Positions 8,610-41,021 of a stretch of DNA of 64,000 nt are shown here, one piece after another. The position numbers were made by a program, and so were the translations under genes. Every line of letters starts with the position of its first letter. The stretch's first letter is position 1. Origin of the DNA: Guillardia theta CCMP2712 (Eukaryota; Protista; Cryptophyta); NCBI RefSeq assembly GCF_000315625.1, contig NW_005434630.1, positions 248,001-312,000 of the forward strand. Direction: 5' to 3'. The notes beneath the pieces are model-generated. The model made no database searches. It saw nothing but the letters and a program-made list of their open reading frames with translations, and had not been told where the DNA came from.

Positions 8610-10750
8610 ATGAGATTGATAACACCGTTCCTCCTCTGCCTCCTCAATGCTCAGGCCGTCACGGTGACCCCTCACCCTTCATCCAATCTGCCAGCACAGA
8701 ATGTTGAAACATGCTGGAAACTTCCATATCCGACAGAATCACTTCGGGGAGGAGGTGACCTGGCCCATGAAAACGGTGGAGCGGTTGCAGCGAACAAGGG
8801 ATCTGTTGGAATCGATCGCTATCGTGGCAAACCTTGGTACGTCATAGAATGCTCCCACTGCCCTGTGCACAGGCACAACAGACCTCCAGAGATGAACGAA
8901 ACAGAATGGGCTGAGCTGAAGAGAATCATTGAAATCAGCGATGAGATCGAACGGCTGAAAGAAAACCTTACAGATCTCCCGAACCATCTGAGAGCAGATG
9001 TAGAGAGATTGAACGGGATGATTCGAAATGGGACGAAGATCAGGCCCGTGGAGGAAGAGCCCGTGAGGTCGAGGAGATACCAACCAAGGTACCCTCGACA
9101 GAGGACCCTCTCGCCTGCTGAACGAGACGCCATCTCTCGAGTACGCTCCAGTCACGGGACGGCCAACGAGCCTTGCCTGGAGGAGGTGAGAGGGTTTTAA
9201 GAGAGCAGGACGAGCATGGTAACGCGCTTGTCAGGTGTTCGAGGATACAACGTACAGGCAGCGGTCGAAGACTCCGTCCTCATACAGGAACTCTCGCGCG
9301 AGGGTCGTTGAGGTAGGAGGGGAGAGATCTCGATCGAAGAGCGAGAATCCCTCCAACATGGTTGAAGCCGTTTCAAGAGGATGTGAAGACACGTTCTACA
9401 ACATGGTGATTGCCTCGTTGCGGAGTTGTGCTGTTTGGATAATGACTTGTTGAAACTGCAGAGACAGTCCTTCCTTGACCCGGTCCCATATCCTCCCTAC
9501 ATGCAAGAGCACCCAGAGAGCATGCGATCTGTACAGTTTGAGCCCAGTCCGCAAGAAATCCATCATACAGAACAGGAGGGAATGGTCTTGCAGATGGAGC
9601 AAGCTCGGGTTGTGCATGGTGTGTTGTCCATGGACGAAGTAGAGCGAAAGTTGCTAGAGACAAACGCAGGGAAAGAAGCCAGGGCAGAGGAGGACAAAGC
9701 TTCCTCTACATCTTCTGCTAGAGAGGTGCAAGGAGGAGCCTTCTGGCATGAAGAGATCGAACGTCGGATCCTCGCAGGAACGCCGAGGAAGAGGACGGAA
9801 GTGGTAGAGGTGGAAGAGGACCAGACGTTCCAGAAGGGGACGAAAACACTGGAAGACGTGGAGAAGGAGTTGTTGATGTCGAGAGGAAGAGGATCGAGCA
9901 AGGTTCTGTTTGTGTCCTTTTCAAACTTTCTCTTCCTGAAAGTGGGTGATTCAGGTTGGTACGAATCCTCAGCCTGGTGTGAATGGAGCAGGGCAAGGGA
10001 TCAGGTCCCTCGGAGGAGAGGAAGGGGTTGGAGGAAGAGGAGGCCAGAAAGAAGAGAATGCCAAGGTCCAGTTGAAGTCCAGGACGAGGCAAGTCGAGCA
10101 GGAGATGAGGGCTGGCGAACCTCCGGTAGTCAAGACGCCAGTAAAGGACGACAAGTCGCAAGATGGAAACTTGTTGAGCAAGGGAGACAGCAACCCATGG
10201 AAGATTCCACAGAAGCAAACCACCATTACCAGGTGAGGAGGGAGGAGGGAGGAGGGAGGAGGGAGGAGGGAGGAGAGTTGGGAAGGGAGGGGAGGATAGG
10301 ATGACCTCATTCCTTGTCAGTGAATTTGCGGCTTCGTTTCCTACTCTCTCCGAGGCTGCAGATTTCACCAAGAAGAGTGAGACGTTTAGACATGGCCATA
10401 CATTGAATTATGCGTAGATCAATAATTATTCTTAGGAACCCCAAGGGTCCACAAGACCTTCCCAAGGCAACAAGCTTCCCAGGCAGAAGAGGAGGATCAG
10501 GGTGCGAGCTGTTCTGCTCTTGCCACTGCTCTTGCACCTGCTCCTCTACATCTACTGACTACCAGCTATCCCAGGCAAGGGCAAAGGAGGAGGGACTTGG
10601 TTGCGAGTGGCACAGAGGGGTATAGAAGCCCATGAAAGTCATCAAGGCAGCTTTGCCGGGTGAGTCACTCCCTCCTTTTCTCTTTCCTCTTCCTTCGTTG
10701 ACGATCTTTGAACCAGGAGCGGAATTTCTCCTCTCGACCTGCTGCTGAAG
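8610..10750 (+). CDS. Hypothetical protein with N-terminal signal peptide and LRGG leader motif (multi-exon, 3' end approximate)
   Basis: MRLITPFLLCLLNAQA is signal-peptide-like; ESLRGG at 8736-8753; repeated (L/M)xxVE(R/K)xLL motifs in ORF 9426-10304. Confidence 0.5.
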
Positions 10751-10761
10751 GGCAAGCGGGA

Positions 10762-13317
10762 CTAAGCATGGCCGCGCCAGCACAATGATTTCTTTGACCT
10801 CCTGTACCTCCTCTGGGGGGTCATGAAAGCTCCTGCACTGTCTTCTTCCTCGGGGTCTCGAGGTCAGCCGTGTCGCCATCTGCTCTCAGTTCAGCACAGG
10901 AGCAGCAGCGAGTAGCAGCAATCACCCTCTATCTCCGTTGCCGTTCGCTTTCTGCTTTCCACCTGCATGCAAGTCGTCACAAGGAGGAGGAGCAGGAGGG
11001 AGGGGAAAGGAGAGGAGTACCTTCGGGGCTTCTGAAACATTGTGGGAAGTGACATTCCTTTGTGCAGCAGGAACTGCGGGGTGATGATTTGGGTCGATTC
11101 TTTTTGGTTGCATTTCCTGTGAGGAGGGGTTGATCAGTGGGGGGGGCGGGAGGAACAAAGAAGGGAGAGCAGGTCGAACGACGAAATGGAAATGAAAATA
11201 ATGATAGTGATTGTGATGACTGCAGTGGTGATGATGGTGAGGGGGGGGGAGGAGTGATGGGGGGATGGGGGTACGAAGAGAACTACCTCGAACTCGTCTT
11301 CGTTGAATGGTTCGGGGTCTGTCACGAAGTCACATGGTGAAGGGAGGAAGCTGAATGATACCTTGCTCATCCTCCTTGAGTTTTTCCATCATCTCAGACA
11401 GTGTCGTATTTCCTGTTCGACCAATCATCCCTCTCAACACCATCCTCCTCCGCTTCTCCTCCCCTCCTCCTGCTGTTCCTCCCCTACCTGCAGTTTCTTC
11501 CTCTTGAATCCGGGCTGGCAGGGACACGTGAGTCTCACCAAGGGTGCAAGGGTGGAGAAGGGAGGGGCAGGGGAGGTGTAGGAGGGGGAAGGATAGGAGA
11601 GGATGATTTCACCTTCGATCTCCTGTAGGATGTTCGTGTAGTTCTTGCCATCCTTCTCTGCCTTGCTCGACAAAACCTTGCAGACCTCGGACGCCTTCTC
11701 AACACGTCAGTTTCAGCCCCCGCTCCTCCTCCCCTCCCCTCCTCACGCTCGCCTCCTCCTCCACTCCCCTTCTCACGCTTGCTCCTTCTCTCCCCAACCT
11801 CCCTCCTCCCCTCCCCTCCTCCACCCCTCCCCTCCTACTCCCCTCCCTCACACTCGCTCCTTCCCTCTCCTTCCTCACCTCCCTGAGAAGTTCAAGGCCT
11901 GCTTGCTTGTCTCCTTTGTAGAGCATCGAGATCCCCGTGATGTACTCAGCCTGCTCCCACGTCATCGTCCACTCCTCATCCCCTCCACTGTCGCTTCCTC
12001 CATCAACTTCTTGTCGTTCGGGTCCAACAAAGTTCTCCTGAGCAAGAGGCACTGCAGAAGATTCAAACATCAGCCTCCTCATCATTTCATACCCTATGCG
12101 CTTGCCTCCTCCACATCTCTCCTCCCGTTCTCCTCCTCCTCCTCCTCCTCCCGCCTTCCCTCTTACCTGCGAGTAATCCCAGGTGCTCTCCTCGAAATTC
12201 TCATTCCACAAGTTCAGGTCGCCGAGCCGAAGGTGGACGTCGGCGAGCAGGAGGTTCAAACTCTTCCTCTCTGCTGGAGTGACGGGAGCGTCTCCGGGAG
12301 TCGGGGAGAGGAGCTCTTTCTGCAGGATTAGACGAGCCGTCTCCAGGATCTCCCACGCTTGTGTACGAGGGTCGTTCGTCTCCTCGTCCTCAGTCACGTT
12401 GGATCGAGCTGTGCGGGCCATGTCAGCTGCCTCCTCCTCCCCCCCTCCACCATCAGTCTCTCGTACTTGTTGCATTGTCGACGCTGGCGATAGCTCCATC
12501 TGCCTGTGCTTCTTTAAACCCTTCCGTCACTTGTTCTTGGACCTCTTCCTCGACTTTTGCTTGCTCCTCTACGCCTGCGCCTGCTTCTTCAATTTTCCCT
12601 TCCCGATTTTCTTCATTCCCTTCTTCGTGCTTCTCCTCTCCGTCCTCTTCATCGCCTTCCTCGCCCTCCTCTTCCTCTTCCTCCTCTCCCTTCAACGCAA
12701 TATGCTTCGGGACTTTCGGCCCGAACAAATTTTCTCCATCGTCCTGCTCCGCTTCCTGTTGGATAGATCACACGGAGGACAGGTTAGAGTCAGCACAGGA
12801 GGGACGAGCGTACCAGGGCAAGAGCTGAGCCGTACAGGAAGTAGTTCTCCGCGCAGCGAATGGACATCTCGCCATGCTGTTCGACCTATGATCGTTATTG
12901 TCAAGACCTTCTCTACCAGACTTTCCTCCTCCTCCTCTTCCCATGTTCTCCATCCTCCATGCTTCTTCCTTCCTCCCTTCAACTTCTGCTCTCTGGCTTC
13001 ACCTTCATCTGCAGCGCAGCTGAGAAGAGATCCGCTGCTTCCGAGAACATTGCTCCCGCCATAGCCTTCTTGCCGCGGCGAACCAGATCAGCAACTTGGT
13101 CGCTGCCAGCCTCTCCCTGCCCTCCTCGCAGCAGCAGGGGAGGAAAACAAGCCGGAGGAGATGGTGATCGGAGGGAGTAGAGCCTTGCTGAGAGTCTCAG
13201 CAGTAGGGTCGATCCTGCCCGTGACGGCGATGAGATCACGAGGGAGAGGAGGGCGATCGCAATCCCGGCGACTAGCTGCCATTGTCGTCGCATCGATTCT
13301 GCGAGGGGGAGTGTCAT
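10762..13317 (-). CDS. NASP: NASP/Sim3/Hif1-family SHNi-TPR histone chaperone with signal-peptide-bearing N-terminal extension
   Basis: RGKKAMAGAMFSEAADLFSAALQMK..HGEMSIRCAENYFLYG, then an acidic insert (12453-12728), then AWEILETARLI...LADVHLRLGDLNLWNENFEESTWDY, matching SHNi-TPR architecture. Basic C-terminus (RKRT, RRYRRSKK). Hydrophobic LVAGIAIALLSLVISS leader. Confidence 0.75.
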
Positions 13318-14072
13318 GACGCCATCGTTTGACCTCTTCGTCTTTTCCTCTCCTCCTCTCTGCCTACTCTCTCAGATCTTTCCTACCAGCCCGTCTGCAT
13401 GGCATGACTTCTGCTGTCCTGTCCTGTCCTGTCCTGTCCTCCCGTCTTCTCTCTGTTCACCTCCACCTCCTCCGACTTTGTCTGCCTGCTGGGTGCATTT
13501 TGCATGGGCCTGAGATCAGGGGGTGGGGGTAGAGTGATTACCCCCATCTGATACCACCAAATTTCGGGTAGGATGCATTGATCCTCGAAAGGGGTGGGTG
13601 GTCCCAAATCGAAAATTCAAAAAAATGAACTGACAAAATGTAGAGATAGGGAGTGAGGAGACGAGGAAGGTAGGAGGACCGCAATGGCGGAGCAGGAAGA
13701 TGAGAAGACGAGGAGAACGGAGAAAGAGCAAGCAGGATGGATGTGCGAGAAGGGTGACATGGGAGACAGAGCTGCGAGTATGAGAAAAGATTTTATGGCA
13801 GATCAGAGGAATTGTGACAAAGGTTTGCAAGACAGAGACTGAAGACAGAGGAGCAAAGGAGAGTTCTATATGAGCACAAGAGTAACCAATGGTAATCAAG
13901 GGCAAGATGAGCCCAAAACGCCAGAGTTGGACGATCCCAGCGGTAGAATGTAGTGCGAGAACAATACAGATGTCAGAAGAAACGTCTGCGAAAGCGAATA
14001 GATTGACGATGGAAGGACTGAGCAGCCGATTCGTAGAGAATTCAGCCCTTGACAAGAAACCTTTGACCATTT

Positions 14073-15922
14073 ATGGCAGGGCTGCTGCACATCTCACAGG
14101 GCAAAAGTTCACCGTCGTGCTCTCGAAGCACGATCTCCTCGCTCAAAACGATTTCCAGGTCGAACCTGAAGATCGACCGCCTTTCTCCTTGCAAGCGCAG
14201 CCGCGACATGGTCCGAGAGAAGATGAGCACACCAATCCGACACAAACCCTCAGTGAAAGGAACTGAAGGGCTCCTAGCGAGGTGTAAGGCGATGAACGAG
14301 CAGCAACTCTACGCTTCCTCCGCTGCTATCACCTCCTTCCTCATCTCCGAGGACGCGCGCAGCACCGAGGTCTACATGGTCAACGCGGAAGCCCTGCATG
14401 GCCTCGGGGAGTACCTGCGGGCAGCGGAGGTGTACAAGCAAGCTCACGAGTGCCTGTCGGAGGCAGAGCAGAAGGGGGAAGAAGGGGCGAAGGTGCTGCA
14501 GGCCATGGCGGAGTGCTACGGGAAGGGGGACCAGCAGAGGAAGCAGCTGGCGACGCTGCTGAGCATCCCGGAGGAGCTGAGGACGGTGCGGGTGCACGTC
14601 GAGATAGCGAAGCTGCAGCATCGGGCGGGGGCAGCAGACAAGGCGCTGTCGGCACTGAAGAGCGCGCTGGACGATGCGCCGCTGGCGATCGAGATGATCG
14701 AGGAGCTTGTGTGGGCGGGGCAGAGCGAGGAGGAGATCATGTCGCACTTCCGGTGCATGGTCGAGAAGGGGTGGCTGCTGGACTTTATCAGGGCGCGGGT
14801 GCAGCATGCCATGTACGACTACAAGGGGGCGCTGCAGAGCTACAAGCAGGTAGCGGAGGCGTTCCCGGAGAACCTGGAGGTGATGTCGGGGATGGCGACA
14901 TGCCAGCTGCACACGCGGGACGTGGTGGGGGCGACCAAGGCTTTCGAGCGGGTGCACGAGAAGGACCGGCACTACCTGGACAGGATGGAGGAGTACGGGA
15001 GCGCGCTCAAGGCCACGGGGTCGTCGGCGAAGCTCAACATCGTGGGGTACGAGCTGGTGAACGTGAGCCCGCAGAGACCGGAGGGATGGATCGTGTGCTC
15101 GATGTACATGGAGTGCCAGGAGGAGAAGGAGCTGGCGCTGGAGTACGCCGAGCGAGCCATCCAGGTAGCGCCGAGGAGCAGCGCGGCGCTGATCCAGCGA
15201 GGACGGATCCAGCTGGATGCGGAGAAGTACGACCTTGCGCTCATGTCGTTCCGGGAGGCGCTGGGGATAGCGAAGAGCATCCATGCGTACCAGGGGCTGG
15301 TGCGGGGATACATCGGGGCGAGGCGGGTGAAGGAGGCGATCACGACGGCACGGGAGTCACTGCAGCAGATGCCCAAGAACGCGCAGGCGTTCAAGCTGGT
15401 AGGGCTTGCCCTTGCGCAGCTGCCGGAGGGAGTCAGCAAGGCGAAGACGGCCTTCGAGCGGGCGATCCAGCTGGATCCCACGTGCCCGGAGTCAGTGCTG
15501 GAGCTGGTGGACATACTGGAGGAGGAGAACAAGCTGCAGGAGAGCGTGGAGGTGATGGAGCGCTTCGTGAGCAAGACAGAGTCAGACGTGGCGCATTGCC
15601 GGCTAGGGGACTTGTACCTGAAGCTAGGGCGTTTCCAGAACGCGCTTGTGTCATATCACAACGCGCTGTCAGCGCATCCGGGGATGGAGGCGGCCACGAT
15701 AGGTGAGGGGGGGGAGAGGAAGGAAGGGGAGGGAGGAGGAGGGAAGGGAGAGGGAGGAGGAGGAGGAGGAGAGATTTGACGGGGTTGACGGCAGGGCTAT
15801 CGAGGCTGGAGAAGGCGATGAAGGGGATCGATCCGGACGGGGACGGGGAGCTTGAGAAGGATTCATACGACAGCATGGGAACCCCATCCACACCCCGCGG
15901 GATGGACGTTATGGACCGTTAA
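14073..15922 (+). CDS. APC7: Anaphase-promoting complex subunit 7-like TPR protein, copy 1 (intron ~15703-15794; true start may lie further upstream)
   Basis: Long TPR array. The spliced C-terminus GLSRLEKAMKGIDPD followed by an acidic tail resembles the plant APC7 C-terminus as recalled. Stop TAA 15920-15922. Confidence 0.8.
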
Positions 15923-17707
15923 AACTCGACCGTCAAGATATCAGCAGCCTCTCCTTCCTCGTTCAATTTAAGGATATAATCAATAATCAGCTATCAACAC
16001 ATTGCAGTCAGTGACGTTAAGGTGTAACGATCCTTCTGAACTTGCAATTAAAATCTCATCGCAGCTCTCCTGCTGTACCACCTCTTGAGTTAATCCGAGA
16101 GGTTCGTCGACCCGAACCCATCAATGTCGTCATTGTCCTGCTGCATCTCCCCGTCCCCGTCCGGATCGATCCCCTTCATCGCCTTCTCCAGCCTCGATAG
16201 CCCTGCCGTCAACCCCGTCAAATCTCTCCTCCTCCTCCTCCTCCTCCCTCCCCTTCCTTCCTCTCCCCCCCCTCACCTATCGTGGCCGCCTCCATCCCCG
16301 GATGCGCTGACAGCGCGTTGTGATATGACACAAGCGCGTTCTGGAAACGCCCTAGCTTCAGGTACAAGTCCCCTAGCCGGCAATGCGCCACGTCTGACTC
16401 TGTCTTGCTCACGAAGCGCTCCATCACCTCCACGCTCTCCTGCAGCTTGTTCTCCTCCTCCAGTATGTCCACCAGCTCCAGCACTGACTCCGGGCACGTG
16501 GGATCCAGCTGGATCGCCCGCTCGAAGGCCGTCTTCGCCTTGCTGACTCCCTCCGGCAGCTGCGCAAGGGCAAGCCCTACCAGCTTGAACGCCTGCGCGT
16601 TCTTGGGCATCTGCTGCAGTGACTCCCGTGCCGTCGTGATCGCCTCCTTCACCCGCCTCGCCCCGATGTATCCCCGCACCAGCCCCTGGTACGCATGGAT
16701 GCTCTTCGCTATCCCCAGCGCCTCCCGGAACGACATGAGCGCAAGGTCGTACTTCTCCGCATCCAGCTGGATCCGTCCTCGCTGGATCAGCGCCGCGCTG
16801 CTCCTCGGCGCTACCTGGATGGCTCGCTCGGCGTACTCCAGCGCCAGCTCCTTCTCCTCCTGGCACTCCATGTACATCGAGCACACGATCCATCCCTCCG
16901 GTCTCTGCGGGCTCACGTTCACCAGCTCGTACCCCACGATGTTGAGCTTCGCCGACGACCCCGTGGCCTTGAGCGCGCTCCCGTACTCCTCCATCCTGTC
17001 CAGGTAGTGCCGGTCCTTCTCGTGCACCCGCTCGAAAGCCTTGGTCGCCCCCACCACGTCCCGCGTGTGCAGCTGGCATGTCGCCATCCCCGACATCACC
17101 TCCAGGTTCTCCGGGAACGCCTCCGCTACCTGCTTGTAGCTATGCAGCGCCCCCTTGTAGTCGTACATGGCATGCTGCACCCGCGCCCTGATAAAGTCCA
17201 GCAGCCACCCCTTCTCGACCATGCACCGGAAGTGCGACATGATCTCCTCCTCGCTCTGCCCCGCCCACACCAGCTCCTCGATCATCTCGATCGCCAGCGG
17301 CGCATCGTCCAGCGCGCTCTTCAGTGCCGACAGCGCCTTGTCTGCTGCCCCCGCCCGATGCTGCAGCTTCGCTATCTCGACGTGCACCCGCACCGTCCTC
17401 AGCTCCTCCGGGATGCTCAGCAGCGTTGCCAGCTGCTTCCTCTGCTGGTCCCCCTTCCCGTAGCACTCCGCCATGGCCTGCAGCACCTTCGCCCCTTCTT
17501 CCCCCTTCTGCTCTGCCTCCGACAGGCACTCGTGAGCTTGCTTGTACACCTCCGCTGCCCGCAGGTACTCCCCGAGGCCATGCAGGGCTTCCGCGTTGAC
17601 CATGTAGACCTCGGTGCTGCGCGCGTCCTCGGAGATGAGGAAGGAGGTGATAGCAGCGGAGGAAGCGTAGAGTTGCTGCTCGTTCATCGCCTTACACCTT
17701 GCTAGGA
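14272..17707. repeat. Large inverted repeat: arms ~14272-15850 and ~16147-17707, spacer ~296 bp
   Basis: Arms are reverse complements with only a few visible differences (CAG/CAT Q>H, CTT/CTG, GCG/GCA, intron GGA-repeat length). Weaker homology continues at 14080-14220 vs 17760-17897. Confidence 0.95.
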
Positions 17708-17771
17708 TGTCCTCCGTTTCATGGCTAATTTGTTTCATTTGGAGAAATGCCAAAAACTTCTCTCGCGCCAT
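16090..17771 (-). CDS. APC7: Anaphase-promoting complex subunit 7-like TPR protein, copy 2 (start uncertain)
   Basis: Reverse-complement copy of the above with a distinct tail ...GIDPDGDGEMQQDNDDIDGFGSTNLSD*; stop at 16090-16092. Confidence 0.8.
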
Positions 17772-19493
17772 GTCGCGGCTGCGCTTGCAAGGAGAAAGGC
17801 GATCGAGCTTTGAATTTGAGCTCGAAATCGTTTTGAACGAGGAGATCGTGCTTCGAGAGCACGACGGTGAACTTCTGCCCTGTGATATGTGCAGCCTGCC
17901 TCAAGCGCTGTTCAGATAGAGTTGCCATGCATCATGATTAATCTCGTTTAGCAACTGATTTCTCGAAGGTTCTTTTCAAGATATTCTGAGACCTATGCAC
18001 ACACATACACACGTATGTGAAAGTAGAAAATTTGAACATACATTTTCACTTGAATTACATCCTTCATGCTGAACAATAACCGTATAGTATTCCTTGTCCA
18101 ACCGATCCTCTCCAACCTCTATGAGAAGGCACTGAATGGCAGGAATTTCCTCCCTGGTCTCTCGCTTCTAAGCCATCATTCTGGTTGTATACTATTCACT
18201 CTTTATTTGGTTCTTCTGTAGACAACAATACTTTTCCCTGAGTTCCTCTGCACTTACACTTAGGCACAGGCTGGCTCTGAGTCAGGTAAAGTCAGCAACT
18301 ACTCCTCAACTGTGCATCCTGCTTCCATGTCTTGATCCTCCCTCTCCCACTCTCTCCCTCTTCTCTTCTTCCTATCCTCTACTCAGCAACCCATCTCTCC
18401 ATCACGCGACCAGCATCACCTGCACTGCTGGAATACCCTACCCCAACCAAGTCCCCCAAGTATAGTAGAATTATACACCCCTATGTTTGACTTGGAGTAC
18501 CCAGAGAAATGGTAGGCATCCACTCTACCCCACCCCCACATACGTTTACCAACAAACATAGACTAGTTATCCATCTCCACCCCTCCTTTAGAAAAGAAAG
18601 TAGGGGGTAGTGACATAAATCAATTGTAACGATAGAACAAGCCTTGTCTGGTACAGGCTTGAATTGATAAGTAATGTTTCATAAAGAAATAAAATTCAAG
18701 TTTTTAGATAAGTATATTAAATAAGTTAGTTAAACAAAACATGGTACAGACATGATATAAAGTGTTCTGGAAGAGTACCGCTTTCTACATCCATTTATGA
18801 ATTTTATAAACCGAATCACATCCCCCATCCCCCATTCAGGCACCCGTCTCCACTTTTTGGTACCCTACGTCAATCTGAATATACCCCTTTATTTCCCAAC
18901 CAAATACCGGTATTTGTAGGGTACATGAAGGAGGATCGAGGTATACTACCGGTGAATTCAATGACCCCTACCCCATGTCCCCCACAATATCCAGGGTCTT
19001 GAAACTAGTCCCCAGCATGTCGATGCGGTGAGTTGCGGCGAAACGGCACAAGGAAACCATGAGAAGGAGGAGGAGAAGACAGAGGAGAACGGAAAATTGA
19101 TGAAAAATGCAATACCATGCAGTGAGAAGAGGAGAAACTCCGAGACAAGATGGATCATGTAGACGCTTTCTTGCTAAGAAGAATTCACGAATTGGTTGTA
19201 TGGGAGCGGAAGGGATTTGCAAGCCAAAAGGAAGGGACTTTGAAGTAGGATAAGAACTGCCCCGTTCACTCAAAGTTACCATACAATGAATGAGGTTTCA
19301 TAAGTCATATAGAGATATATGATCTTTATATTGTTTGTATCGGTTCGCAGCTGATGCTATACCTCTACACTTGCTCTGTACATGGACAATTGAGTGCAGC
19401 CTCTCCGATTAATGCTCTCTCTGTGTGTACAAAACATACTTCCATTGATGTTTCCTCGATTTTCGTCTCGTGGATGCTTGTACTGCCAATGGA

Positions 19494-19933: not shown

Positions 19934-20056
19934 GGAAGGTGAACACCTTTGACCGTATTCGGCCAGCTGTCTTGGAGAGAATGCCAAAAAAAAACTGACG
20001 CTTGTGAACAGTGCCATAACAGCGCTGTGAGCGCGAGTTTAATGAGAGCTACTCGT

Positions 20057-21211: not shown

Positions 21212-21371
21212 CTTGGCTGTGAGTCAGAGAGGATCAGATGATGTGTCGAGGCTGTCAGGGATCCGCGAGAAAGAAGCTCGCGAAGGCTGGAGGGGGGAGG
21301 GGGGGAGGGGAGGGGACAGGCGGGGACGAGGAGAGGGCGGGAAGAGGAGAGGAATACACCTCACCCACCCA

Positions 21372-21487: not shown

Positions 21488-21496
21488 GGCGGAAAC

Positions 21497-22880: not shown

Positions 22881-27047
<4,167 letters not shown>

Positions 27048-27059
27048 GGCAGGTAAGGG

Positions 27060-27420
27060 AGAGGGGCGAGCGAGAGGTGGAGGAGGGAGGGAGGGAGGGA
27101 GGGAGGGAGGGAGGGAGGGAGGGAGCGAGGGAGGGAGGGAGCGAGGGAGCGAGGGAGGGGCAAAGAGCGAGGGAGGGGCAAAGAGCGAGGGAGAAGAGGG
27201 GCGAAGGAGCGAGGGAGGAGCAAGGGAGGGAGCGAGAGAGGGAGCGAGGGAGGGATGGGCAAAGAGCGAGGGAGGGAGGGGGAAAGGCGAGGGAGCGAGG
27301 GGCGAGGGAGCGAGGGAGCGAGGGAGGTGAGAGAGAGCGAGGGAGGGGCGAAGGAGCGAGCGAGGGAGCGAGCGAGCGAGGGACGGACGGACGGACGGAC
27401 GGAGATAGAGGAGAGGAGAG
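27060..27420. repeat. GA-rich low-complexity tract between divergent genes
   Basis: Nearly pure GGGA/GCGA/GGAC runs. Confidence 0.9.
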
Positions 27421-30172: not shown

Positions 30173-31809
30173 ATGAGCACTTTGGACGACCTTGAGGAAA
30201 TGGCACAGAGTGTAAGTGAATTCCTGTTCTATCTTCACTTTCGTTCTACTTGTTTCATGTCTTCCGAACCTTAGACATAACTGACTGTATTTGTTTCTAG
30301 CCCGTTAGCCAAAATTTCGGATCACGGCACAATCGCCGAGCCTCTGTAGGGAGGATCACGTTGGAGGACACTGCCATGGCCAGGAAGGCCTTGACGACAT
30401 ACAGCAGTTTCTCATCGATGGACCAACTCAAACGAAAAGGGGTTTTATCAGGATCGCAGTCACCTGTTGCTGGTAAGAGCCCCACAACGAAAAGGTCCAG
30501 GTTCGAGAAAATTGAATCGGAAGAATCGAAGACAGAAATTCTTAGTGCAGCCGTTGCGATTTATCAAGTCCTTTACGCTCCGAAAGGCAGATTATACAAC
30601 AGGAATGCAAGCGAATGGGCAGAATTACGGACAAAGAATCTCTTCTGGGCCTACATTTGGACGTTGGCTGGGATGGTTGTGGCTGTTTGGGAGAACGAAG
30701 TACTGTGGTCGAATGACCGCACCCCCGATCTTCATACGTTTTGGTTGAAAGTGCTAATTGTCGTCACTACCATCATTGCGATGTACTTTTATCGAGAATA
30801 CTATCGAGCCGCCATTGCTCAGGAAAGGCTGCGAGGAAATCCTCTGCACAATGGGTTTGTTTCCTATGTCAATCTTCAGGCATGTGGCCTTTACGTGCAA
30901 GCTGTTCTCGATTTGCTGTGCCTCTTGCCAATGCCTCTACCATTCTTGGACTTCGAGTTTGATGTTTGGAATGACTCCTTTGAAGGATCTTGCACCTATC
31001 AGATTGATGTGTTCCTTATGGTTGTGATGTTTCTTCGTATCAGAATGTTTCCGCGCTTCTATGGGGAATGCATCAGCGGACTTGCCAGTGACATCGCAAG
31101 AGCTTACGGAAATGTAACAAAGCTTGTCGTTGGGGAATCTTTCATATCCAAATATCTTCTCACATCCAATTTCAATATGGTTTGTATGCTCTGGCTCCTG
31201 CTGATTCTTTTCTATTCGTACTGTTTGATGCTCTTTGAACGGCCGATGGTCTTCATAGATGTCCCTCACAGTCGATTGGATCGTTTTGCCAATTGCGTAT
31301 GGTGCACCGTGATCACCATGACTACTGTTGGTTATGGCGATGTCTTCCCATCGACTCGTTTCGGCCGGCTCATAGCCATGCTCTCTGCGATATCAGCCAT
31401 GATCATGGTCGCTGTTTCGACAAACATCGTAAATGTGGTACTTTCACAGCATCGACTTGAGGTCATGTGCTTGCGAGCTGTCGAGATGTTGGCATCACGT
31501 GACGATGTGAAGATCAAGGCAGCAGAGGTCATTCAGGCTGTCTGGCGTGCTTATGCTGGGCCAGAGCGGAGCAGCAAACGTCGAAAAGGGAGGAAGGTCA
31601 GGGACAACGATGAAGTTCTCCTCAAGGTAGTTGCATTCACAGAGGCTTCAAGGGCGCACATTACTTCCAAGAACGACTTCAACTCTGATGAGGTGGCCTT
31701 GTTGGGGCAGTGTATGAGCATCTCGGATCGTTCCCTGTCTTCTATGGATGGAGTGGTGGAGAAACTTGATTCGGCCATCGCAAATCTGCAAAAGCTCGAC
31801 GGATGCTAA
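30173..31809 (+). CDS. SK/KCNN-like 6-TM potassium channel with IQ-type calmodulin-binding motif (intron 30212-30300)
   Basis: Pore signature ITMTTVGYGDVFP, six hydrophobic segments, AAEVIQAVWRAY, C-terminal coiled coil. Confidence 0.88.
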
Positions 31810-32322
31810 TTGCAGGAACCATTTCTTCTCTCTTCTGGATTTTCTTTATTCTTTCGCTTCATTTTCTCTTCCATAATGAATATCTGTAAATTTCTTGATA
31901 CGTAGCCACAACATGGCCCCGATGATACGTAGCCACAACATGGTCCCGCTGTCCTCGAAACTTCCGACGACATAAAAGGTCGAACAAGCTTAGTAACACT
32001 AACTTAACTTTGAGTAAACGCTATGACCTTTTATGTTTCTGCTACAGGATCTGCTCAGATCACCCCTGAGATCGCCCAAGGATTAGAGGGTGCGGTATGA
32101 GGGTCGCATGCAGGAATACCACGGGGGCTGAAGGTTGCAAGGAGGGAGGGAGGGAGGGAGGGAGGGAGGGAGGGAGGGAGGGAGGGAGCTTTGATGGAAG
32201 AGAACCCCCTCAAAGAAGGATTCGAGCAATGTTGTATCTCAGAGAAGGATTCGAGAAATGTTGTACTTTTCTGGAAGACGCGTTTATGTAAACTCACCGT
32301 CTCACGTCTTGTATTTTGCAAA

Positions 32323-35048
32323 GATGCTCCCGCGGCGACTCCGAGTCAGGGCAGAATGCATACCTGCATTGCTCTGCCTGGTGCTTCTGTTGAACACAAA
32401 CTTTCTCTGCGCGACATCGTCCAGAGATGAGATCTCGCCCCCTCGTCCTCTTCTAGCGTACCAGGTGAATGCATTGCTAACGCTCACGGCAACATCTAAT
32501 TGCATCCCCGTCCAGGTTAGCGACAACCTAAGGTTGAGGGGCGGGGCTTTCTGGTTTTCTGCAGTTGCAGGCCCTGCAGAGAAGGTGAGGAAGAGCAGCA
32601 GTCGGCGAGCTCTCGTCTGGGAGCTCAGTCATGGTTGCTAGGCTGCTTTCTGGAGACAAGTCAGCACAGCGCCGGCACAATGGATTCGCGACAGGTGCTT
32701 CTGACCTGATGGACAAGTGTCTTCCTCACTCCCGATAGGTTGCAGAAGCTCTGCCCCTTTGGATCGAAGGAGGCCAACATAGCGGCCAAGGAGCTCTCGA
32801 GCCAAGGTGTGTGGAGGCCGTGGAGTTCTTGGAAGGAGCTCTGCTGAGGTGGAAACGGGGCCTGGCAGGAAGTAGACTGCGAGGAGGAGGGCTCTTGCTG
32901 AGTAAGCCAGGCTCGGAAGCTTCACCTGCTGAGACTCACATGGGGTCCAAGTTTTCAGAACCTTTTGCCCAGGCATGTTGCGCAGACTGATGCTTGCTTG
33001 TGAACGTCCCGCTCTGACTCAAGTCGATGGTAGCCTGGAGACACTGTGCTGGTTACTGGAGCTTCAGGATTTCTAGCAGGTCGATGATGGCACGAAGAGT
33101 TGAGAGTGTATGACGTCAGTCTCTCTCCAGGACATGTGATCAACGAGCTAATCAAGCGAGGATACCACGTGAGGGGAACAGTGCGAACGTTCAACGACAC
33201 GCAGAAAGTCGCAGCTCTCCAGCAGCTTTTCCCAAAGGTGCTAGCATTTCTGCGGGAGTCTGCTGATATGTAGTCTGCTTGCAGCTTGAGTTGTATGAGG
33301 CAGATTTGCTCGACGATGGGAGCTTCAATGAAGCTATCAAAGGTGTTTTCCCTCCCCCCATCCACACAATGTTGGTTGCAACTCCGTTGTAATGGTCTCC
33401 TCCAGGCTGCAAGTTTGTGCTTCACACAGCTTCTCCTTTCCACTATGAAGTTCAGAATCCAGAAACAGATCTAGTCGAGCCTGCCGTGAAGGTCTCGGGG
33501 AATTGAGCTAGTGAGGGGTGAGCTGAAACACGGCAGGGCACCATGAACATCCTTCGAGGGTCAAGGGTTGTGGGAGGTGTCAGAAGAGTTGTCATCACCT
33601 CTTCCGCCGCTGCCATCCTGACGCTCAACATCCCTTCTGACCGTGAGACCTGCACTGCCTCCAAGCCTGCAGCTCTCTGAGTGATTATGGCAGAAAACTA
33701 TGCATGGAGCGAAGATGACTGGAATGTCGACACAACGCTTGAGGACAACGCATACAGGTTTGCAGCTACGTCCCCTGGAATAGTTTCTGAATGTTCTATG
33801 AAGGTACAGCAAGACGCTCGCTGAACAGGCTGCTTGGGTCTGGATTGCTTCGGCTCTGAACAGCCACAACTATGGTGTTGCCGGTCTGTTTGCGGGTGCC
33901 TTCGCCTTCCCCTCAAATAGCTGGACTGCAGGTGGATTTTCAGATCCCAAGGAAATCAAGAAAGCGTTGGATGCTGGAGGACAGGTGAAGGGAGCTTCTT
34001 TCCCCTTCCTCTTCTTCCTCTTCGTCCCAGTCCCCTCTCGACTCCAATCATTTATGCTCTTGCTCGTCGCCGTCTTCCCAATCCTCTCCTCCTCCCTGCC
34101 CATTTCCTGATCAACTACGCTATCACCACCAGAGCTTGCAATAGCTGCATCAACTCCATCTATCATCTTCATCACCATTGTCGCACTCGTTGAGATTGTT
34201 CCTGTGCAGGAGTACAAAGTCGACTTTGACATCGTTACCATGAACCCCTCGTTCCTCACCGGCCCGTCACTCTCCAACCGAACAGGTCCCCTCCTCCCGC
34301 TCCCAGCCTCTGCTGCCTCTCATTCCCTCCTGGAGCAGATTCAGAGAGCACGAAACTCATCAAGGATCTGCTGGACGTCAGGGCCTCCTCCACTCAGCGA
34401 CCTGCCATGTGACTGCGCTGCAGGGACGATATTCGCACAACGGAACCAACGGAGGAAGGTGCATCGGGTGTGTGGATGTCAGAGATGTTGCAGCGGCGCA
34501 TGTCAATGCCATGGAGAACCCGTCAGCGTTCGGTGAGGAGGAGTTGGAGTGGCAAGGGAGTGGGGGAGTGGGAACGGGAGCGAGAGAGAGAGGAAGTGGA
34601 AGGGGATGCCATGGCGGGGCTGATTTTTTCTGCGCAGGGCGATACTTGATCTCTTCAGACAAGGGGATCAGCCACTTGGAACTTGCCAACATGTTGAAGA
34701 GCGGTGCAAACTCCTCCTCCTCCTCCTGCTCCTCATTGCTTGCTCACTTGCTCTCAGACAAACGCTTCAAGGATTTTCCTCTCCCACGACATTCCATGGA
34801 GCCCATCACCTACAAGCCCTGCTACAACACGGCCAAGGTGAGTCGCCCTCCGTCCTGGTCAGCAGGGGAACTGACAAGAAGGAAGGCGAGAAAGGATCTC
34901 AACCTGCACCTCCGGCCAATAGCAGACTCAGTGATCGATGCTTCCCTCCTCCCCTCATCATCGGCTGAGACTTCACCCGCAGATTCGAGATGCTGCTGAA
35001 GACCTGATCAGGAAGAACCTGATCGAGCAAGGCGCCATGGCTGCTTAA
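32323..35048 (+). CDS. NAD(P)-dependent extended SDR (cinnamoyl-CoA reductase/DFR-like) with signal peptide and LRLRGG leader
   Basis: VLVTGASGFLA, YHVRGTVR, VLHTASP, LVEPAVKGTMNIL, VITSS.AA, YSKTLAEQAAW, VDVRDVAAAHVNAMENP. N-terminal IPALLCLVLLLN; LRLRGG at 32528-32545. Confidence 0.88.
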
Positions 35049-35523
35049 CGAGTATCAGAGCCTGTCAGACTCACTACTTTACTAATTTAATCACTTTCGG
35101 GTAGTACTTCCTAAGTTCAACAATTTTGATCAATCCTTTGACTACTTCGGTGGCCCGCGGATCACACTGTGACAGCGCCAGTCAGTGACTCAGTGATTGA
35201 GCTTGTCAGTAATTGAGGTGGAAGGGACCGGGCCTGGCTCCGGCGGCCCAGCGGCCGGCCACAGCCCGGGCGGACTGTTAGACTGAGAAAAGCCCTCATC
35301 TCCGCTAATGACCAGGTCAACTACCCACCCATCTGCCCACCCATCATAATTCCTACCCCATTCTTTTTCCCATGGGTACTGAATCTTGATGTAAATACCC
35401 TACCCCTATATTTCTAATACATTCAACCTTAAAACACCGGTGTTTTGAGTACCCCAGGGTCTACTTTGTAATGCCCCTACTACCCTCCACTCTCCGACCC
35501 TAGCACAGCTCTGTTTGGACACC

Positions 35524-36578
35524 ATGTACGCGCTGTACTCGTACATGCTCTTCGGGGAGTGCGCCGTGTGCGCCGTGCTGATGGCGCTATCCTTTGCTCC
35601 CTCCTTCATCAAGAGACCCATGAAGAGCGCCATCCAGAGGTCTGACGGAGGAGGAGGAGCTTCTGATCATGACGATGAGCGCTTCGCAGCGTTCAAGTAC
35701 CCTTCTCACGAGAAATCATTGTGGGCTTCGGAGTCATCCTAGTAGGTGAGACAAGCCCATAGGAGTGCTGCGAGTCTGACTACCGATGCCTCCTCGTCTC
35801 TCTCTGCTCCTGTGCTCATCCTTGTCTTTGTGTCTTCTCGTTCGCTCACGGTTCACGTATCTGTCGGGATGGTACTGGTCGATTATGGTGTCTCGCTCTC
35901 AGCTGCATTTGCGGACTCCTACCTGAAAGCAACGAAGCATCGTCACCCGCACACCGATGGGTGGAAGGCATTCGCTCCCTCTCTTCCTCGTTCGAAGCTG
36001 AAGAAGGATTGATAGGACAAGATGGAACATCAAAACAAGAGGTTGCGAGCGGAGAGAAACATTTACATCTCCTTCGGGTCTGTTCTCGTCAATCGGTTGT
36101 CCATCCTGTGAAAGTGCAAGCAGGTGCATGTTCATCTTTCTCGTCGTGTGTCAACTCTGGTCGCTCATCAAGCGCGTCACGGAGCTCGTGAGTGAGGGCT
36201 GGGGGGTTGGGCTACCTGACAAGCCGCGCAGGAGGAGAAGGTGGCGCGAGATGAGAAGTTGCATGAGGTGTACAAGAAGCAGGTAGCGACTCTTTCATGC
36301 CGCCTGCCCTCGATGACCAGAGGACGGGAAGGTGGAGGGCAACGAGAAGTTCCGCAAGAAGCTCGAAGGAGATAAAGATGGTCAGTGAGGAGGAGGAGAG
36401 GGGCGTGTGGCATGACTGGACATCAGCAGATGAGCAGGACACTGCTAGTGAGCTGCAAAGACTGAAAGAAGAGAATGAGAGGTGGACAGGAGGAGGAGGA
36501 GGAGGAGGAGGAGGAGATGACTTTGAGATAGGCTCAAGGAAAAGCTGGGGATGGACGACTCGTCCGAGACAACGCTGA
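35524..36578 (+). CDS. BCAP31: B-cell receptor-associated protein 31-like ER membrane protein
   Basis: Three TM segments, RAERNIYISF motif (BAP31 RAQRNLYISGF), coiled-coil tail ELQRLKEENE. Confidence 0.7.
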
Positions 36579-36669
36579 GGAGGAGGAACGTAGGGGAGCG
36601 AGATAAGAAGGACTAGCCTCATCATTGTCCCTCTTTGGCTTTCATGTGTCAGAAATTTTTGGAAGACTT

Positions 36670-39600
36670 TCATGTGTCAGGAACTTTCCGAACTTTTGGA
36701 AGATCGTGGTAGCCGTACGCCAAGGCCTTGATCGTATCCTCCCACCTCTTAGCCTTCTCCTCGCGCTCCTCCTCCTCGTGTGAGGATTCCGAAAAGTCGC
36801 TGACCAGATCCACCTGCAAGAGCACGCGATCAGCCGCTGGGGAAACGCGTGCCACGTTCATGGTCTGACCTCCCCTTCCTCTGCTTCTTGCGGTGCTACG
36901 ACATACTCGCTCCCGAACGCTGCCGCTGCGAACTCTCGAGACTGGAGTAGGGTGAGGGAACGAGAGGGAAAGAGTACAAGATTGTGTAGACCTGTTTGGA
37001 GCCGGGGGGGATGGAGCAGTCTGAAAGCGTCTTGGTGAAGCTGAGAAGGATCTGGAAGCAGAGGGTGAGTGGAATTATGGCCAGAGAAGTAGAGGAGGAG
37101 GAGGAGGAGGAGGAGGAGCAGGGGGGGGAGAGATGAACATAGGTGAGACTTGGAAGCAGTGGGAGGGCAGCAGGGAAGAGTCGAGGACCGAGTAGTCTTG
37201 GACAGCAGGTGAAGAGCAAGCACGCAATGAGCAGGAACGAGGAGGAGGAGGAGGAGGAGGAGGTGACCAGTGAAGGAAAGAAAACTGGACAATGAAGGGA
37301 GCTCGGGAAAGGATTCGGGGGGCAGACTGACATCCATGCATTCCTTCCGCCTCGTTCTCAGCCATTGAGGGACGTCGTCTATCTTCTCCTTCCACATGTA
37401 TTCTACGATTTCATAGGCGTCCTGACTTCGATGTGAATGACGAGCAAGGGCTGGATGTGCTCACCGCTTCGTCTAGGTTCCTGAGCGAGGCGTCTGCTCC
37501 TGCAACAAGCAGCAGGCGAACGATCTGGAGCAAGAGTCACGTACGCGTGCGAGGGAGGAGGAGGGGGAGAGTATGTTGACCTTTGGAGCTCCGCCGAAGG
37601 CGGCGAGCATAAGGGGAGTTACGCCGATTGAATCTCTGACACGTCGTTGGAAGAGGAGCGGGAGATGGAGCAGGAGCAGGAGCAAAGCGAGGAAGCAGAT
37701 AATGTCAGACACAGGAAAGGGAGAAACAAAGACGTTGCGACAAGATGGTGGGGGAGAAGGTAGAGAGGAGTGAAGGAACGGATCAAAGAAGGAGGAGGGA
37801 GAAGATTCAAGAAAGGCTACCTTGCGTTGGGGTTGGCGCCAGCAGCGAGGAGGGCTCGGCAGCAGAAGAATTGGTTGGAAAGAGAAGCAGCATGGAGGGG
37901 AGTGCAGAGGGCGGAGGAGTTATGACAGATATCAGGATACACGGGTGCCTGAGTGAAAGGAATGAGAAGCAGAACAGCAAAGGTTGCATCGAAGCCAGGA
38001 ATACAAACAGGAAGGAAGATGTTTTGTGAGAGGTATAAGGGACTTGTAGGAGCTGGAAGAGAATAAATAGAGAAGGAGGAGGGAGGAGAGAGGGAGGGAG
38101 GAGGGAGGAGGGAGGAGGGAGGAGGGAGGATCCATACCTCTTTCATCAGTCTTCGTAATCTTCCAGTATACCTCCAATGAAGAATCAGAGTTGAACCTTC
38201 GACTAAAGTCTTACCCCAGCCACGCGCAGCTGAAAAAGTCCTCCACATACCAATCCTGACATGTGATCAACATAGAAGAATTGTTATACTTCACCCCAAC
38301 GTCACTGATGATGCTCGGAGCAATCAACTTGGGGATGTGATTTCCATTCAGGCTGGCGCAAGGTCAAGTGAAGCAGCAGGATGGTAAAAATTGTTCACAT
38401 TCGCCCCATCTTCTCAAACAGTACGTAGCTATTGTTCCCCTCCTTAATCAGCCTCTCCCTCTTTGCAACAGCTTCCTGCAAGGGTGATAGGAGGGGTGCG
38501 GACGAAGAGTGTTATGGTAGCGACTTGAACTTCGCAATGCTCGCTAGTCACCTGAACCACCTCTTCTTCGAATTCATACTTCGGAATCCGGAACCCCTGC
38601 CATCTTTGTCTCAGTCTCAAGACATGAAGTTTCATGGGGACCAGTTCAAACAGTGGGCCTTTCCAGAACACTGAGAAGCAAGACGGTCAGAGAAGTTGAT
38701 CAAGAATAGTTCAAGTTCACCTTGATCCAAGTCGCTGGTATTGAGCACCTACAAGAAATCATGAGCACCATCAGCTGCAATTTCCGCAGCCATCAGGTTT
38801 GAGAACCTTTCCAGAGGCAGGGATTTGTTTGTCAAGCCCCTCTATACTAGCGTTGCTGCACGCATAGTCGTGATCATGTTGGAATCGCTCAAGCATTGAT
38901 AGAAATGATTCTTGGCTACCTCCAATTCGACAGCTGACCTTTCTCCACGAACTTGAGAAACGAGATCACCGATTTCTTGTTGATGCTTGACAGCAGCTGT
39001 CAATGACAACATCTCTTGCAATCAAACTTTCGCACCTCAAAATCTGCTTCGTCAGCAGCTCCGCCGTGGTGGTGGGCCTGGGCTCAACAACAAGTGACTC
39101 TGCGATCCAATCGCACTTCTTGAGGCAGAAATCAGCTCTCTTGCTGAACTTGACCTTTCGCACAAAGGCCTGAAAAAAACTGTCATCGTCGCTGCTGCTG
39201 TACCCATCAAGTGCAACCACAGCATACAAGAGGAGGGGAAACAATTACAAGTACCTCAACATTCTGTTTCAGCTGCATCGAGTCAAAGAGTTCCTTGTCC
39301 TGCCATTCAAGGTCACTACCAGTTTGCTGCTCACGTTTCAACCTCCATGAAAGGATCAAGTAGTCGTGGTATACACACAAACTCGTAGGCCCGAGCTCGA
39401 CCTACACGCGAATCGTTCAGTTCTAGGAGAACAAAGCAACTCTCTCTCCTCCCTTTCACTCCCTCCATCCTCCTCCTCCCTCTCCCGCTCTTCTTCATCA
39501 CTCTCCCTTTTCCTTTCACTTTCGTCTGCCTGCCCGCATTGCTCGTTTCTCCTTCCCCCCCTTGCTCCATTGTGCTCTCTTCCTTACTGAAGCGCGCAAT

Positions 39601-41021
39601 AAGGTAGCTTTCGTTCTTGAGGATAATCTCCGCAGTGACATTCAATGCCAAGGACACCTACAACAAACTTCAGCAACGTCGAGGCTTCTTCCACCGTCTC
39701 CTCTCATCACATTCTTAGGAACCCAAGGGACTACTAAAATGTGAAAAGAACAAGCATCATTCATTGGCTGTCAAATCAACTTGACAAGTTCAAACCGTCG
39801 GGGTCATATTGAAGCTTCTTTCCCGACTGCTCTAGGATGGTTTGAACATGATACTTTCGAAGCGACTCCCCCCGATCCTCTCGGGCCAAATCAACGGCCC
39901 TGGAGGAAACGCAAAGTCAGCACCTGCAGCAAAAAGACTCGTCATCGAACCATCATCCATCAGCAAGAAGCACCTTCAGCCCTAACATAAACTTCTTCAC
40001 CTGATCCATCGAAAGTGTCAGAATCAAAATTCTTTTCAAAGTCCGTTGAAGCATCTTGTAAACCATCATGTCAGCAGCAAGAATACACCATAGAGAGAAA
40101 CTCTCACCCTCTCCAGTGTTGACAACTCTTTCTTCTTCCTTCTCGCCCATGTAGATATCCAGGGCCTGCAGCAAAAAGACTCGTCATCGAACCATCATCC
40201 ATCAGCAAGAAGCACCTTCAGCCCTAACATAAACTTCTTCACCTGATCCATCGAAAGTGTCAGAATGAGATATTGCTGATCTTACAGGCAAACAGCACGT
40301 TCTTCGGCTTCAGACCGAGCTCCCTTGCTTCGTTTGCAATGTTCTTGGACAGTCCCGGGACATCCTCAAACCCTGTTGCGTTCGGAGGACCGGTCTTGGG
40401 GTAGGGCGGCTCGTTGTCCAGGAGTGACGAGATCTTCTTCATCTTCTCCTCAACCTCCTCAAACAGCCGTTCCTTCATCTTTGACAGCTCATCGGGATCC
40501 ATGGTCTTTTCTTTCTCGTCCCAGACCTGGGCGTTTCTGACCATCTTCCTCACGAAACCATCCTCGTCCTCCTCCTCGGTCATCAGCAGCTGTCTGACGT
40601 CGAAGACGTCGGCCTGGACTGGTTCCTCTACCTCCTCCTCAGGTACCACTTGACCAAAGGCCTCCTGTATCTCCCGTCGCGCCCTGCCTACAGCATCCCC
40701 CAATGTGGTGAAGATCGATTCGGGCTGGTGGTTGAGGCAGTCGTCGAGGCAAGTGCAGTTCGGTTTGCAACTCAGTTTCTCCTTCATGACATTCATGAAC
40801 TCCTTATTCCACATCTTGTCCAGCTCATCCACTTCTTTTGTCTGCCATAACTTTGCGACCTCTGTAGGTTTCTCTTCCGCCTTCCTCCCACCCCTCAACC
40901 TCACGGGCAGACATGCTTTCCCACAACCATAGTCACTCACTCTACCGCGACATGGGGCAAGGGTGCTGTCTACGGTGAAGGCATACCATGTAGCCAGCAG
41001 GATCAAAGCAGCAAGCCTCAT
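36670..41021 (-). CDS. Large multi-exon protein with signal peptide and VRLRGG leader and C-terminal ankyrin repeats (may be two genes)
   Basis: MRLAALILLATWYAFTVDS; VRLRGG at 40887-40904; ankyrin repeats TPLHAAS...LLAAGANPNARDSIGVTPLMLAA...IVRLLLVAGADASLRN. Confidence 0.6.
39923..40266. repeat. About 102-bp exact direct repeat (39923-40024 and 40165-40266)
   Basis: CCTGCAGCAAAAAGACTC...GAAAGTGTCAGAAT occurs twice, 242 bp apart. Confidence 0.95.

Follow-up and report, generated by a model that had tools for sequence, protein, structure and literature searches.

An LRGG motif copying the ubiquitin tail ends the leaders of signal-peptide-bearing proteins in Guillardia theta and may be the processing site of a periplastid presequence

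Introduction

In the cryptophyte Guillardia theta, a red-algal endosymbiont persists as a plastid and a periplastid compartment with a nucleomorph. A stretch of 64,000 nucleotides from strain CCMP2712 (contig NW_005434630.1, positions 248,001 to 312,000 of the forward strand; hereafter the window, with positions counted from its first letter) raises the question of why four unrelated genes should open in the same manner, with a signal-peptide-like start, a spacer, and an LRGG motif resembling the C-terminus of ubiquitin. These are a gene of unassigned function (gene 1), the gene of the histone chaperone NASP, that of an SDR-type reductase, and a fourth gene discussed below. A preliminary description of this DNA had pointed out the four motifs and proposed that they serve leader processing, conjugation, or sorting.

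We find that LRGG occupies the junction between leader and mature protein and that it is conserved across species while the leader around it diverges. On balance, we lean toward the view that LRGG is the conserved end of a periplastid presequence and would serve as its processing site.

Results

LRGG follows signal-peptide-like starts in four genes

Re-reading of the window placed all four motifs where the preliminary description had located them, each in an ATG-started frame (Table 1). Across all six frames, about 128,000 codons, LRGG occurs 11 times. A fixed rule that asks for a methionine 25 to 130 aa upstream of LRGG and, no more than 25 aa after this methionine, for a 10-residue stretch with a Kyte-Doolittle hydrophobicity of at least 2.2 picks four of the 11, which are exactly the motifs of gene 1, NASP, the SDR-type reductase, and the fourth gene. 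They lie 41 to 70 aa from the respective signal-peptide-like starts. The looser pattern [LIVMFA][RK]GG yields 32 matches in the window, none of which qualifies as a gene start. As had been claimed earlier, the four LRGG copies use unlike codons (CTT, CTG, or TTG for Leu; CGG, CGA, AGG, or CGC for Arg; GGA, GGG, GGC, or GGT for Gly), so that any constraint acts at the level of the protein.

Could the pattern have arisen by chance, as a compositional artefact of G-rich and R-rich low complexity downstream of hydrophobic frame starts? The window is indeed rich in low-complexity GGA/GAG and CT repeats. However, given approximately 5 to 9 LRGG per 100,000 codons and approximately 8 signal-peptide-like starts, the combination is expected about 0.05 times, against four cases observed, and these differ in their codons. 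Since, moreover, every one of the nine NASP lineages described below keeps LRGG unchanged, as does the orthologue from Hanusia phi, within leaders that cannot be aligned, we consider chance refuted and its residual probability negligible.

Table 1. Features of the four LRGG leaders in the window
Gene	Feature	Position	Strand	Remarks
Gene 1	Signal-peptide-like start, MRLITPFLLCLLNAQA	8610..8657	+	Function unassigned, ~520 aa
Gene 1	Spacer, 28 aa	8658..8741	+	Transit-peptide-like
Gene 1	ESLRGG motif	LRGG 8742-8753	+	ES-LRGG then GDLAHE
NASP (GUITHDRAFT_110226)	Signal-peptide-like start, MRRQWQLVAGIAIALLSLVISSPSRA	13216..13293	-	
NASP	Spacer, 28 aa	13132..13215	-	5 Arg, 0 Lys, 0 acidic
NASP	LLLRGG motif	13120-13137	-	LRGG part 13120-13131; LL-LRGG then QGEAGS
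NASP	Mature NASP (SHNi-TPR), coding exons and introns	11287..13119	-	Last exon further 3'
SDR-type reductase	Signal-peptide-like start, MLPRRLRVRAECIPALLCLVLLLNTNFLCA	32324..32413	+	
SDR-type reductase	51-nt in-frame GT..AG intron in leader, predicted	32465-32515	+	Size class of gene 1 introns
SDR-type reductase	LRLRGG motif	32528-32545	+	LRGG part 32534-32545; LR-LRGG then AFWFSA
SDR-type reductase	Rossmann fold exon start, PGDTVLVTGASGFL	33034..33075	+	Also phase 0
Fourth gene	Signal-peptide-like start, MRLAALILLATWYAFTVDSTLA	40956..41021	-	
Fourth gene	VRLRGG motif	40887-40904	-	LRGG part 40887-40898; VR-LRGG then RKAEEK

The motif is conserved at the leader/mature junction

Using the G. 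theta NASP as the query of a full HMMER scan against 1.84 billion representatives, we obtained 74 hits. The six best hits besides the query all carry N-terminal extensions of 90 to 175 aa, in which a signal-peptide-like start is followed by an unalignable spacer and then by hydrophobic-x-LRGG. One of the six is a Baffinella frigidus protein (KAJ1480543.1), and metagenomes or read assemblies supplied the rest. A metagenome scan using a closer NASP alignment added L009-12 (VMVRLRGG then AG) and L013-14 (LALRGG then VG). LRGG is thereby found at the leader/mature junction in nine of nine distinct lineages whose NASP bears a leader (G. theta, Baffinella frigidus KAJ1480543.1, P0003, P0004, P0006, P0008, P0009, L009-12, and L013-14). 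A word-index search with the NASP frame matched only the G. theta model itself, poly-Glu words having swamped this search.

In the NASP alignment, LRGG is the sole conserved block of the leader and is followed by 16 to 37 residues and then by the first TPR repeat (TPR1). For the G. theta protein, TPR1 begins some 10 to 16 aa after the GG; the earlier estimate had put the start of the NASP domain about 10 aa past this point. NASPs that possess no leader, from Galdieria, a fungus, a choanoflagellate, a pelagophyte, and metagenome sequences, begin 8 to 25 aa before TPR1, that is, within the stretch that comes after the GG of the leader-bearing forms. Arabidopsis NASP (PDB 7w5m) enters the alignment at its residue 24, opposite a point 16 aa past the GG of P0004. 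Because the leaderless proteins start just after the position of the GG, the motif sits where the mature protein should begin.

A second case is provided by the fourth gene. Using its first exon in a word-index protein search, we recovered a single relative, from Hanusia phi, with 56% identity; the Hanusia phi protein matched only itself when used as the query of such a search, and a metagenome scan with the alignment of the fourth protein gave zero matches. The Hanusia phi leader has a different signal peptide and its spacer shows indels relative to that of G. theta (10 residues more in one place, 15 fewer in another), yet the LRGG is unchanged, reading MHLRGG then KKVGRK where G. theta has VRLRGG then RKAEEK.

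The motif copies the ubiquitin tail and ends lysine-poor leaders

Altogether, L, R, G, and G are invariant in 13 of 13 distinct leaders. Ten of these have a hydrophobic residue at -6 and six have Arg at -5; combined with LRGG, this preference is the pattern of ubiquitin L71-R72-L73-R74-G75-G76. The residue after the GG (P1') is G, A, Q, K, R, or V, and in none of the 13 is it Pro. Upstream of position -6 nothing is conserved, the leaders being 41 to 88 aa in length with spacers of 19 to 65 aa that are mutually unalignable. LRGG is almost certainly a selected element of this class of leader.

We scored signal-peptide features for the four window leaders and for the leader-bearing orthologues with a complete N-terminus. 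The features of an endoplasmic reticulum (ER) signal peptide are present: a basic n-region, a hydrophobic stretch of at least 10 residues (Kyte-Doolittle 2.35 to 3.19), and a small-residue -3/-1 site. Plausible small-residue cleavage sites, predicted by eye, are AQA then V, SRA then G, LCA then T, and TLA then P, making V, G, T, and P the likely +1 residues of the four leaders, none of them F, Y, W, or L.

The spacers are rich in Arg and Ser and poor in acidic residues, resembling transit peptides. Counting from residue 21 to the GG in 11 leaders (window 8610-8753, 13120-13293, 32324-32545, and 40887-41021, plus P0001, P0003-P0006, P0008, and P0009), we found 53 Lys or Arg versus 19 Asp or Glu among 427 residues, gene 1 having the weakest spacer in terms of charge (2 basic, 2 acidic). 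The same residues comprise just 3 Lys versus 50 Arg. The mature parts of these proteins, in contrast, contain 96 Lys versus 95 Arg (Fisher p = 3e-10), and Lys returns directly past the GG, as seen in RKAEEK, KKVGRK, and KDAEDT.

This scarcity of lysine bears on the possibility that LRGG is never cut and acts instead as a recognition or sorting element. As a mimic of the ubiquitin tail it might be read by SELMA, the translocon derived from ubiquitin and ER-associated degradation (ERAD) components, or by a component of the ubiquitin system in place of lysine ubiquitination; alternatively, it might be a stop or retention signal against Toc/Tic passage. Leaders with only 3 Lys in 427 residues would suit such a role. 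Diatom SELMA import is said, in work attributed to Lau and colleagues in 2016, to need N-terminal lysines, and with a proteasome in the periplastid compartment ordinary ubiquitination of cargo would be risky, so that a built-in mimic could substitute for it. However, the motif always stands at the very end of the leader, where leaderless homologues begin, as expected of a cleavage site, whereas an element used for binding would be free to lie at any place. Moreover, it is the fold of ubiquitin, and not its tail, that ubiquitin receptors bind. An uncut element thus appears distinctly improbable to us.

The leaders are probably of the periplastid type

In both cryptophytes and diatoms, an aromatic residue or Leu at +1 directs a protein to the stroma, and any other residue directs it to the periplastid compartment (PMC4494062). 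Judging by their signal peptide, nonaromatic +1 residue, and Arg-rich spacer, the four window leaders are likely periplastid-type, and we infer a periplastid destination for the LRGG proteins. NASP, which chaperones histones H3/H4, would make sense behind a signal peptide only if delivered to the nucleomorph.

With the periplastid bipartite signal of Gould et al. 2006 and Gruber et al. 2007, as rendered in PMC4494062, the leaders share the ER signal peptide and the nonaromatic +1 residue, a spacer with positive charge and few acidic residues, and cytosolic- or nuclear-type cargo. The difference is that the published rule, in that rendering, names the +1 residue only; for a conserved motif at the leader end, we found no description in the literature covered.

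Since all four proteins have an ER-type signal peptide, and gene 1 and the fourth gene are without known function, one might also think of LRGG as a site of propeptide processing in host secretion (ER, Golgi, vacuole, or secreted proteins) that has nothing to do with the plastid. We consider this very unlikely: as a nuclear histone chaperone, NASP has no role in the secretory lumen; its leader-bearing lineages carry the motif without exception, two of them from named cryptophytes; and Arg- and Ser-rich spacers with few acidic residues look like transit peptides.

In the full-text literature covered, which included ASAFind 2.0 (2025), SELMA phylogeny (2025), nucleomorph proteome re-evaluation, aminoacyl-tRNA synthetase (aaRS) targeting, and transit-peptide-like borders, we did not find LRGG, RGG, or di-glycine mentioned for periplastid leaders; figures and some key earlier papers lie outside this coverage. 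The preliminary description, which knew of no characterized function for the motif, agrees with this literature check. The LRGG end of the periplastid bipartite leader would accordingly be previously undescribed, an earlier description being possible outside the literature covered.

Transcripts and gene models

RNA-derived contigs from three public runs extend over gene 1, starting at 8554 or farther upstream; downstream of the leader they reveal six short GT..AG introns of 49 to 73 nt. The NASP leader exon is transcribed as well, as indicated by pieces of RNA-derived contigs at 13001-13256 and 13119-13300. In one of these contigs, the match stops at 13300 beside a ...ctcgcag acceptor and unmatched letters follow; because of this, the ATG at 13293 is the more likely start codon compared to that at 13317, the signal peptide being unchanged either way. 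Gene 1 (+) and the NASP gene (-) converge at 10716-11286, where their 3' ends overlap or abut, and RNA-derived contigs cross 11115 from gene 1 into the NASP gene or in reverse.

The NASP frame corresponds to GUITHDRAFT_110226 of Guillardia theta CCMP2712 (scaffold JH993008.1, assembly GCA_000315625.1), with which it is identical over the exons, and the product is assigned to Pfam SHNi-TPR. The public model begins at an internal Met (MFSEAADLF...) and omits an 80-aa transcribed leader (window 13003-13293, -). N-terminally truncated models of this kind would hide LRGG leaders in proteome-based surveys.

In the SDR-type reductase, the leader probably holds a 51-nt intron, whose removal would shorten the spacer to 23 aa as compared to 40 aa and would leave the position of the motif unmoved. 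The leader exon ends at 32584 in phase 0. If spliced to 33034, across a putative 449-nt intron, it would bring the Rossmann strand to 16 aa after the GG. The next exon weakly resembles residues 26-52 of aldehyde reductase II, DFR, and CCR chains in the PDB (E = 0.013); the SDR identity is based on the GxxGxxG exon and these weak PDB matches, and a Pfam search of single SDR exons returned zero matches.

The spacer of the fourth gene measures 19 aa. Its earlier label as an ankyrin protein is not secured: an Ank repeat lies approximately 3 kb downstream and may belong to the gene. In Hanusia phi, the 403-aa orthologue of the first exon yielded no Pfam domain. Just downstream of this exon in G. 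theta, a 107-nt direct repeat with 105 of 107 identical positions (40160-40266 and 39918-40024, -) duplicates an exon-like stretch (…KKFMLGLKVLLADG / RCFLLMDDGSMTSLFAAG) and complicates the gene model; it could be an assembly or tandem-duplication feature.

Other features of the window

CT-rich and GGGAGGGA-type microsatellites are common within and between genes (26760-27120, 10235-10305, 8479-8553, and elsewhere) and translate to runs of SSLLPPP or GREGGREGG. A fifth LRGG with a hydrophobic stretch upstream (26995, +) was rejected, as it belongs to a CT-rich low-complexity tract without a start codon. A potassium channel gene of the two-pore/ion-transport type lies at 30361-31809 (+); its product faintly resembles SK channels and is an ordinary host membrane protein without an LRGG leader. 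Two TPR-repeat genes at 14261-15755 (+) and 16218-17771 (-), with frames of 568 and 517 aa, form a convergent (tail-to-tail) inverted duplication with 99.1% identity over 1495 nt; both have many TPR Pfam matches and a faint likeness to ANAPC3. A frame at 60371-61122 (+) encodes collagen-like G-x-y triple-helix repeats (Pfam Collagen, E = 3.5e-8), unusual in an alga, and a hydrophobic, anchor-like segment from 60371 forms a separate frame directly upstream of the repeats.

Discussion

A conserved block at the exact junction of leader and mature protein looks like a processing site, and LRGG probably is one. In the scheme we propose, nucleus-encoded periplastid cargo would carry a leader of three parts: an ER signal peptide, a variable spacer of approximately 20 to 65 residues that is Arg-rich and nearly Lys-free, and an invariable terminus, hydrophobic-x-L-R-G-G, modeled on the final six residues of ubiquitin (LRLRGG). 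The leader would pass the ubiquitin-dependent SELMA translocon, after which LRGG would mark the point of removal. The cut, after the GG, would be made by a cysteine peptidase of the periplastid compartment that recognizes the ubiquitin tail and would give a mature protein with an N-terminus of normal length. Cutting off a Lys-free leader would also strip anything attached to that leader, and the cargo would be freed without exposure to the proteasome.

As for the enzyme, the six-position identity with the ubiquitin tail and the ubiquitin/ERAD origin of SELMA suggest one that reads this tail, and we tentatively propose an activity of the deubiquitinase (DUB) or ULP type. The tails of ubiquitin, NEDD8, and ISG15 (LRLRGG, LALRGG, and LRLRGG, respectively), which are cut by deubiquitinases and proteases for ubiquitin-like proteins, have the same four residues and the same preference at -6/-5. 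In linear ubiquitin fusions (Ub-L40, Ub-S27a, polyubiquitin), as in the leaders, the cargo comes directly after the GG, the P1' residue of the leaders being variable and, in the 13 examples, never Pro. Different from ubiquitin-like precursors, however, the leaders have no beta-grasp fold of ~70 aa and present only a short, unstructured-looking spacer behind the signal peptide. Such a fold is not strictly required, given that viral papain-like proteases (coronavirus PLpro and others), which are deubiquitinases too, cut linear LXGG sites with no ubiquitin fold ahead. Those sites serve polyprotein processing, not organelle import, and no kinship of the enzymes is implied.

Two further systems invite comparison. 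Double-glycine leaders of bacteriocins and cyanobacterial peptides also end in GG with a hydrophobic residue at -4 (L in all our leaders), and a papain-like cysteine peptidase, the C39 domain of ABC exporters, removes them as they cross the membrane or afterward. They are, however, bacterial, 15 to 30 aa long, have no Sec signal, and follow the pattern LSxxELxxIxGG, none of which applies to the LRGG leaders. PEXEL/TEXEL (RxLxE/Q/D, RRLxx) and oomycete RxLR have in common with LRGG that a short motif 15 to 60 aa behind a signal peptide redirects a secretory protein, and PEXEL is a protease site, but sequence, lineage, and destination differ; none of the 13 LRGG motif contexts fits an RxLxE/Q/D, RRLxx, or RxLR pattern.

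A processing site could also be served by an enzyme unrelated to ubiquitin, for example, an M16 metallopeptidase of the mitochondrial processing peptidase (MPP) or stromal processing peptidase (SPP) type, with Arg at -2 (LRG/G), or an Arg-specific serine protease (LR/GG), the likeness to the ubiquitin tail then reflecting convergence toward a site that is small, flexible, and basic. A location between leader and mature protein would be equally expected, as would leaders without a ubiquitin fold; furthermore, Arg at -2/-3 is the classical rule for mitochondrial presequences, and the related SPP removes plastid transit peptides. What speaks for a tail-reading enzyme instead is that four invariant residues together with hydrophobic-Arg at -6/-5 far exceed the known specificity of MPP/SPP sites, and that the match to ubiquitin spans six positions. 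The absence of Pro at P1' fits deubiquitinase behavior, in what is a small sample of 13 leaders. We therefore judge an enzyme of the MPP, SPP, or serine protease kind to be unlikely, albeit with a chance that deserves attention.

Which peptidase might read the LRGG end of the presequence? Cryptophytes have no member of the clade of ptDUP, the deubiquitinase of the diatom periplastid compartment, and "an alternative enzyme" is anticipated for them (PMC12412216). Some other enzyme would hence have to act on the leaders, and Phaeodactylum may be an imperfect test system; diatoms possess ptDUP and have no proteasome in the periplastid compartment. In G. theta, this compartment retains a 26S proteasome, and a zinc-finger protein with a UfSP/ZUFSP-type cysteine peptidase domain, its role unassigned, is encoded in all four sequenced cryptophyte nucleomorphs (PMC6559170). 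More doubtfully, this UfSP/ZUFSP-type protein (Gt2_270 and its orthologues) is a candidate for a ubiquitin-tail-specific cysteine peptidase that would cut the presequence. Each cargo would then be a built-in "pseudo-ubiquitin fusion," in which the Lys-free leader and LRGG might link SELMA to presequence removal and shield the cargo from the proteasome.

Several points weigh against LRGG being the processing site of a periplastid presequence, or call for caution. Cleavage, mature N-termini, and localization are predicted here from sequence, and the signal peptides, including their cleavage sites, were judged heuristically, by hydrophobicity and by eye. The cross-species evidence comes from two protein families, NASP and the fourth protein, and the enrichment was counted within the window. 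In 20 kb around the NASP gene of Baffinella and another 20 kb around a metagenome NASP gene, we found no frame with signal peptide and LRGG other than NASP, a null result that says little because these regions are gene-poor or poorly called. The Pfam ubiquitin domain is absent from the leader first-exon frames of gene 1, NASP, the SDR-type reductase, and the fourth gene, as well as from P0001 and P0003. Most deubiquitinases draw their affinity from the ubiquitin body, so that with leaders free of a ubiquitin fold, a classical enzyme dependent on this body is not an obvious fit. Lastly, a frame at 63396-63542 (+) has a signal peptide with F at the likely +1 (…ETVSC then FLAPSLPARL) but is unusable as a stromal control, as the window ends before its downstream exons can be made out.

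The leader-processing and deubiquitinase interpretation of the preliminary description thus survives in part. Its motif is nonrandom, constrained at the protein level, located at the leader/mature boundary of periplastid-type leaders, and conserved across cryptophytes, whereas the deubiquitinase frame is qualified by leaders that have no ubiquitin fold and by a ptDUP that has no cryptophyte member.

Sorting between the periplastid compartment and the stroma, as well as removal of the leader, is known in outline only, the single published determinant being the residue after the signal peptide. The LRGG leader end would provide a sharp sequence marker for predicting the periplastid and nucleomorph proteome of cryptophytes and could rescue truncated gene models such as GUITHDRAFT_110226. 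As a processing site, it would predict mature N-termini exactly. It would also suggest a testable link between the ubiquitin-derived SELMA import and presequence processing, in the one lineage whose periplastid compartment has kept both proteasome and nucleus and which is without the diatom-type ptDUP. If true, ubiquitin-type processing would constitute a new mechanism of presequence removal, unseen in mitochondria, primary plastids, and other complex plastids.

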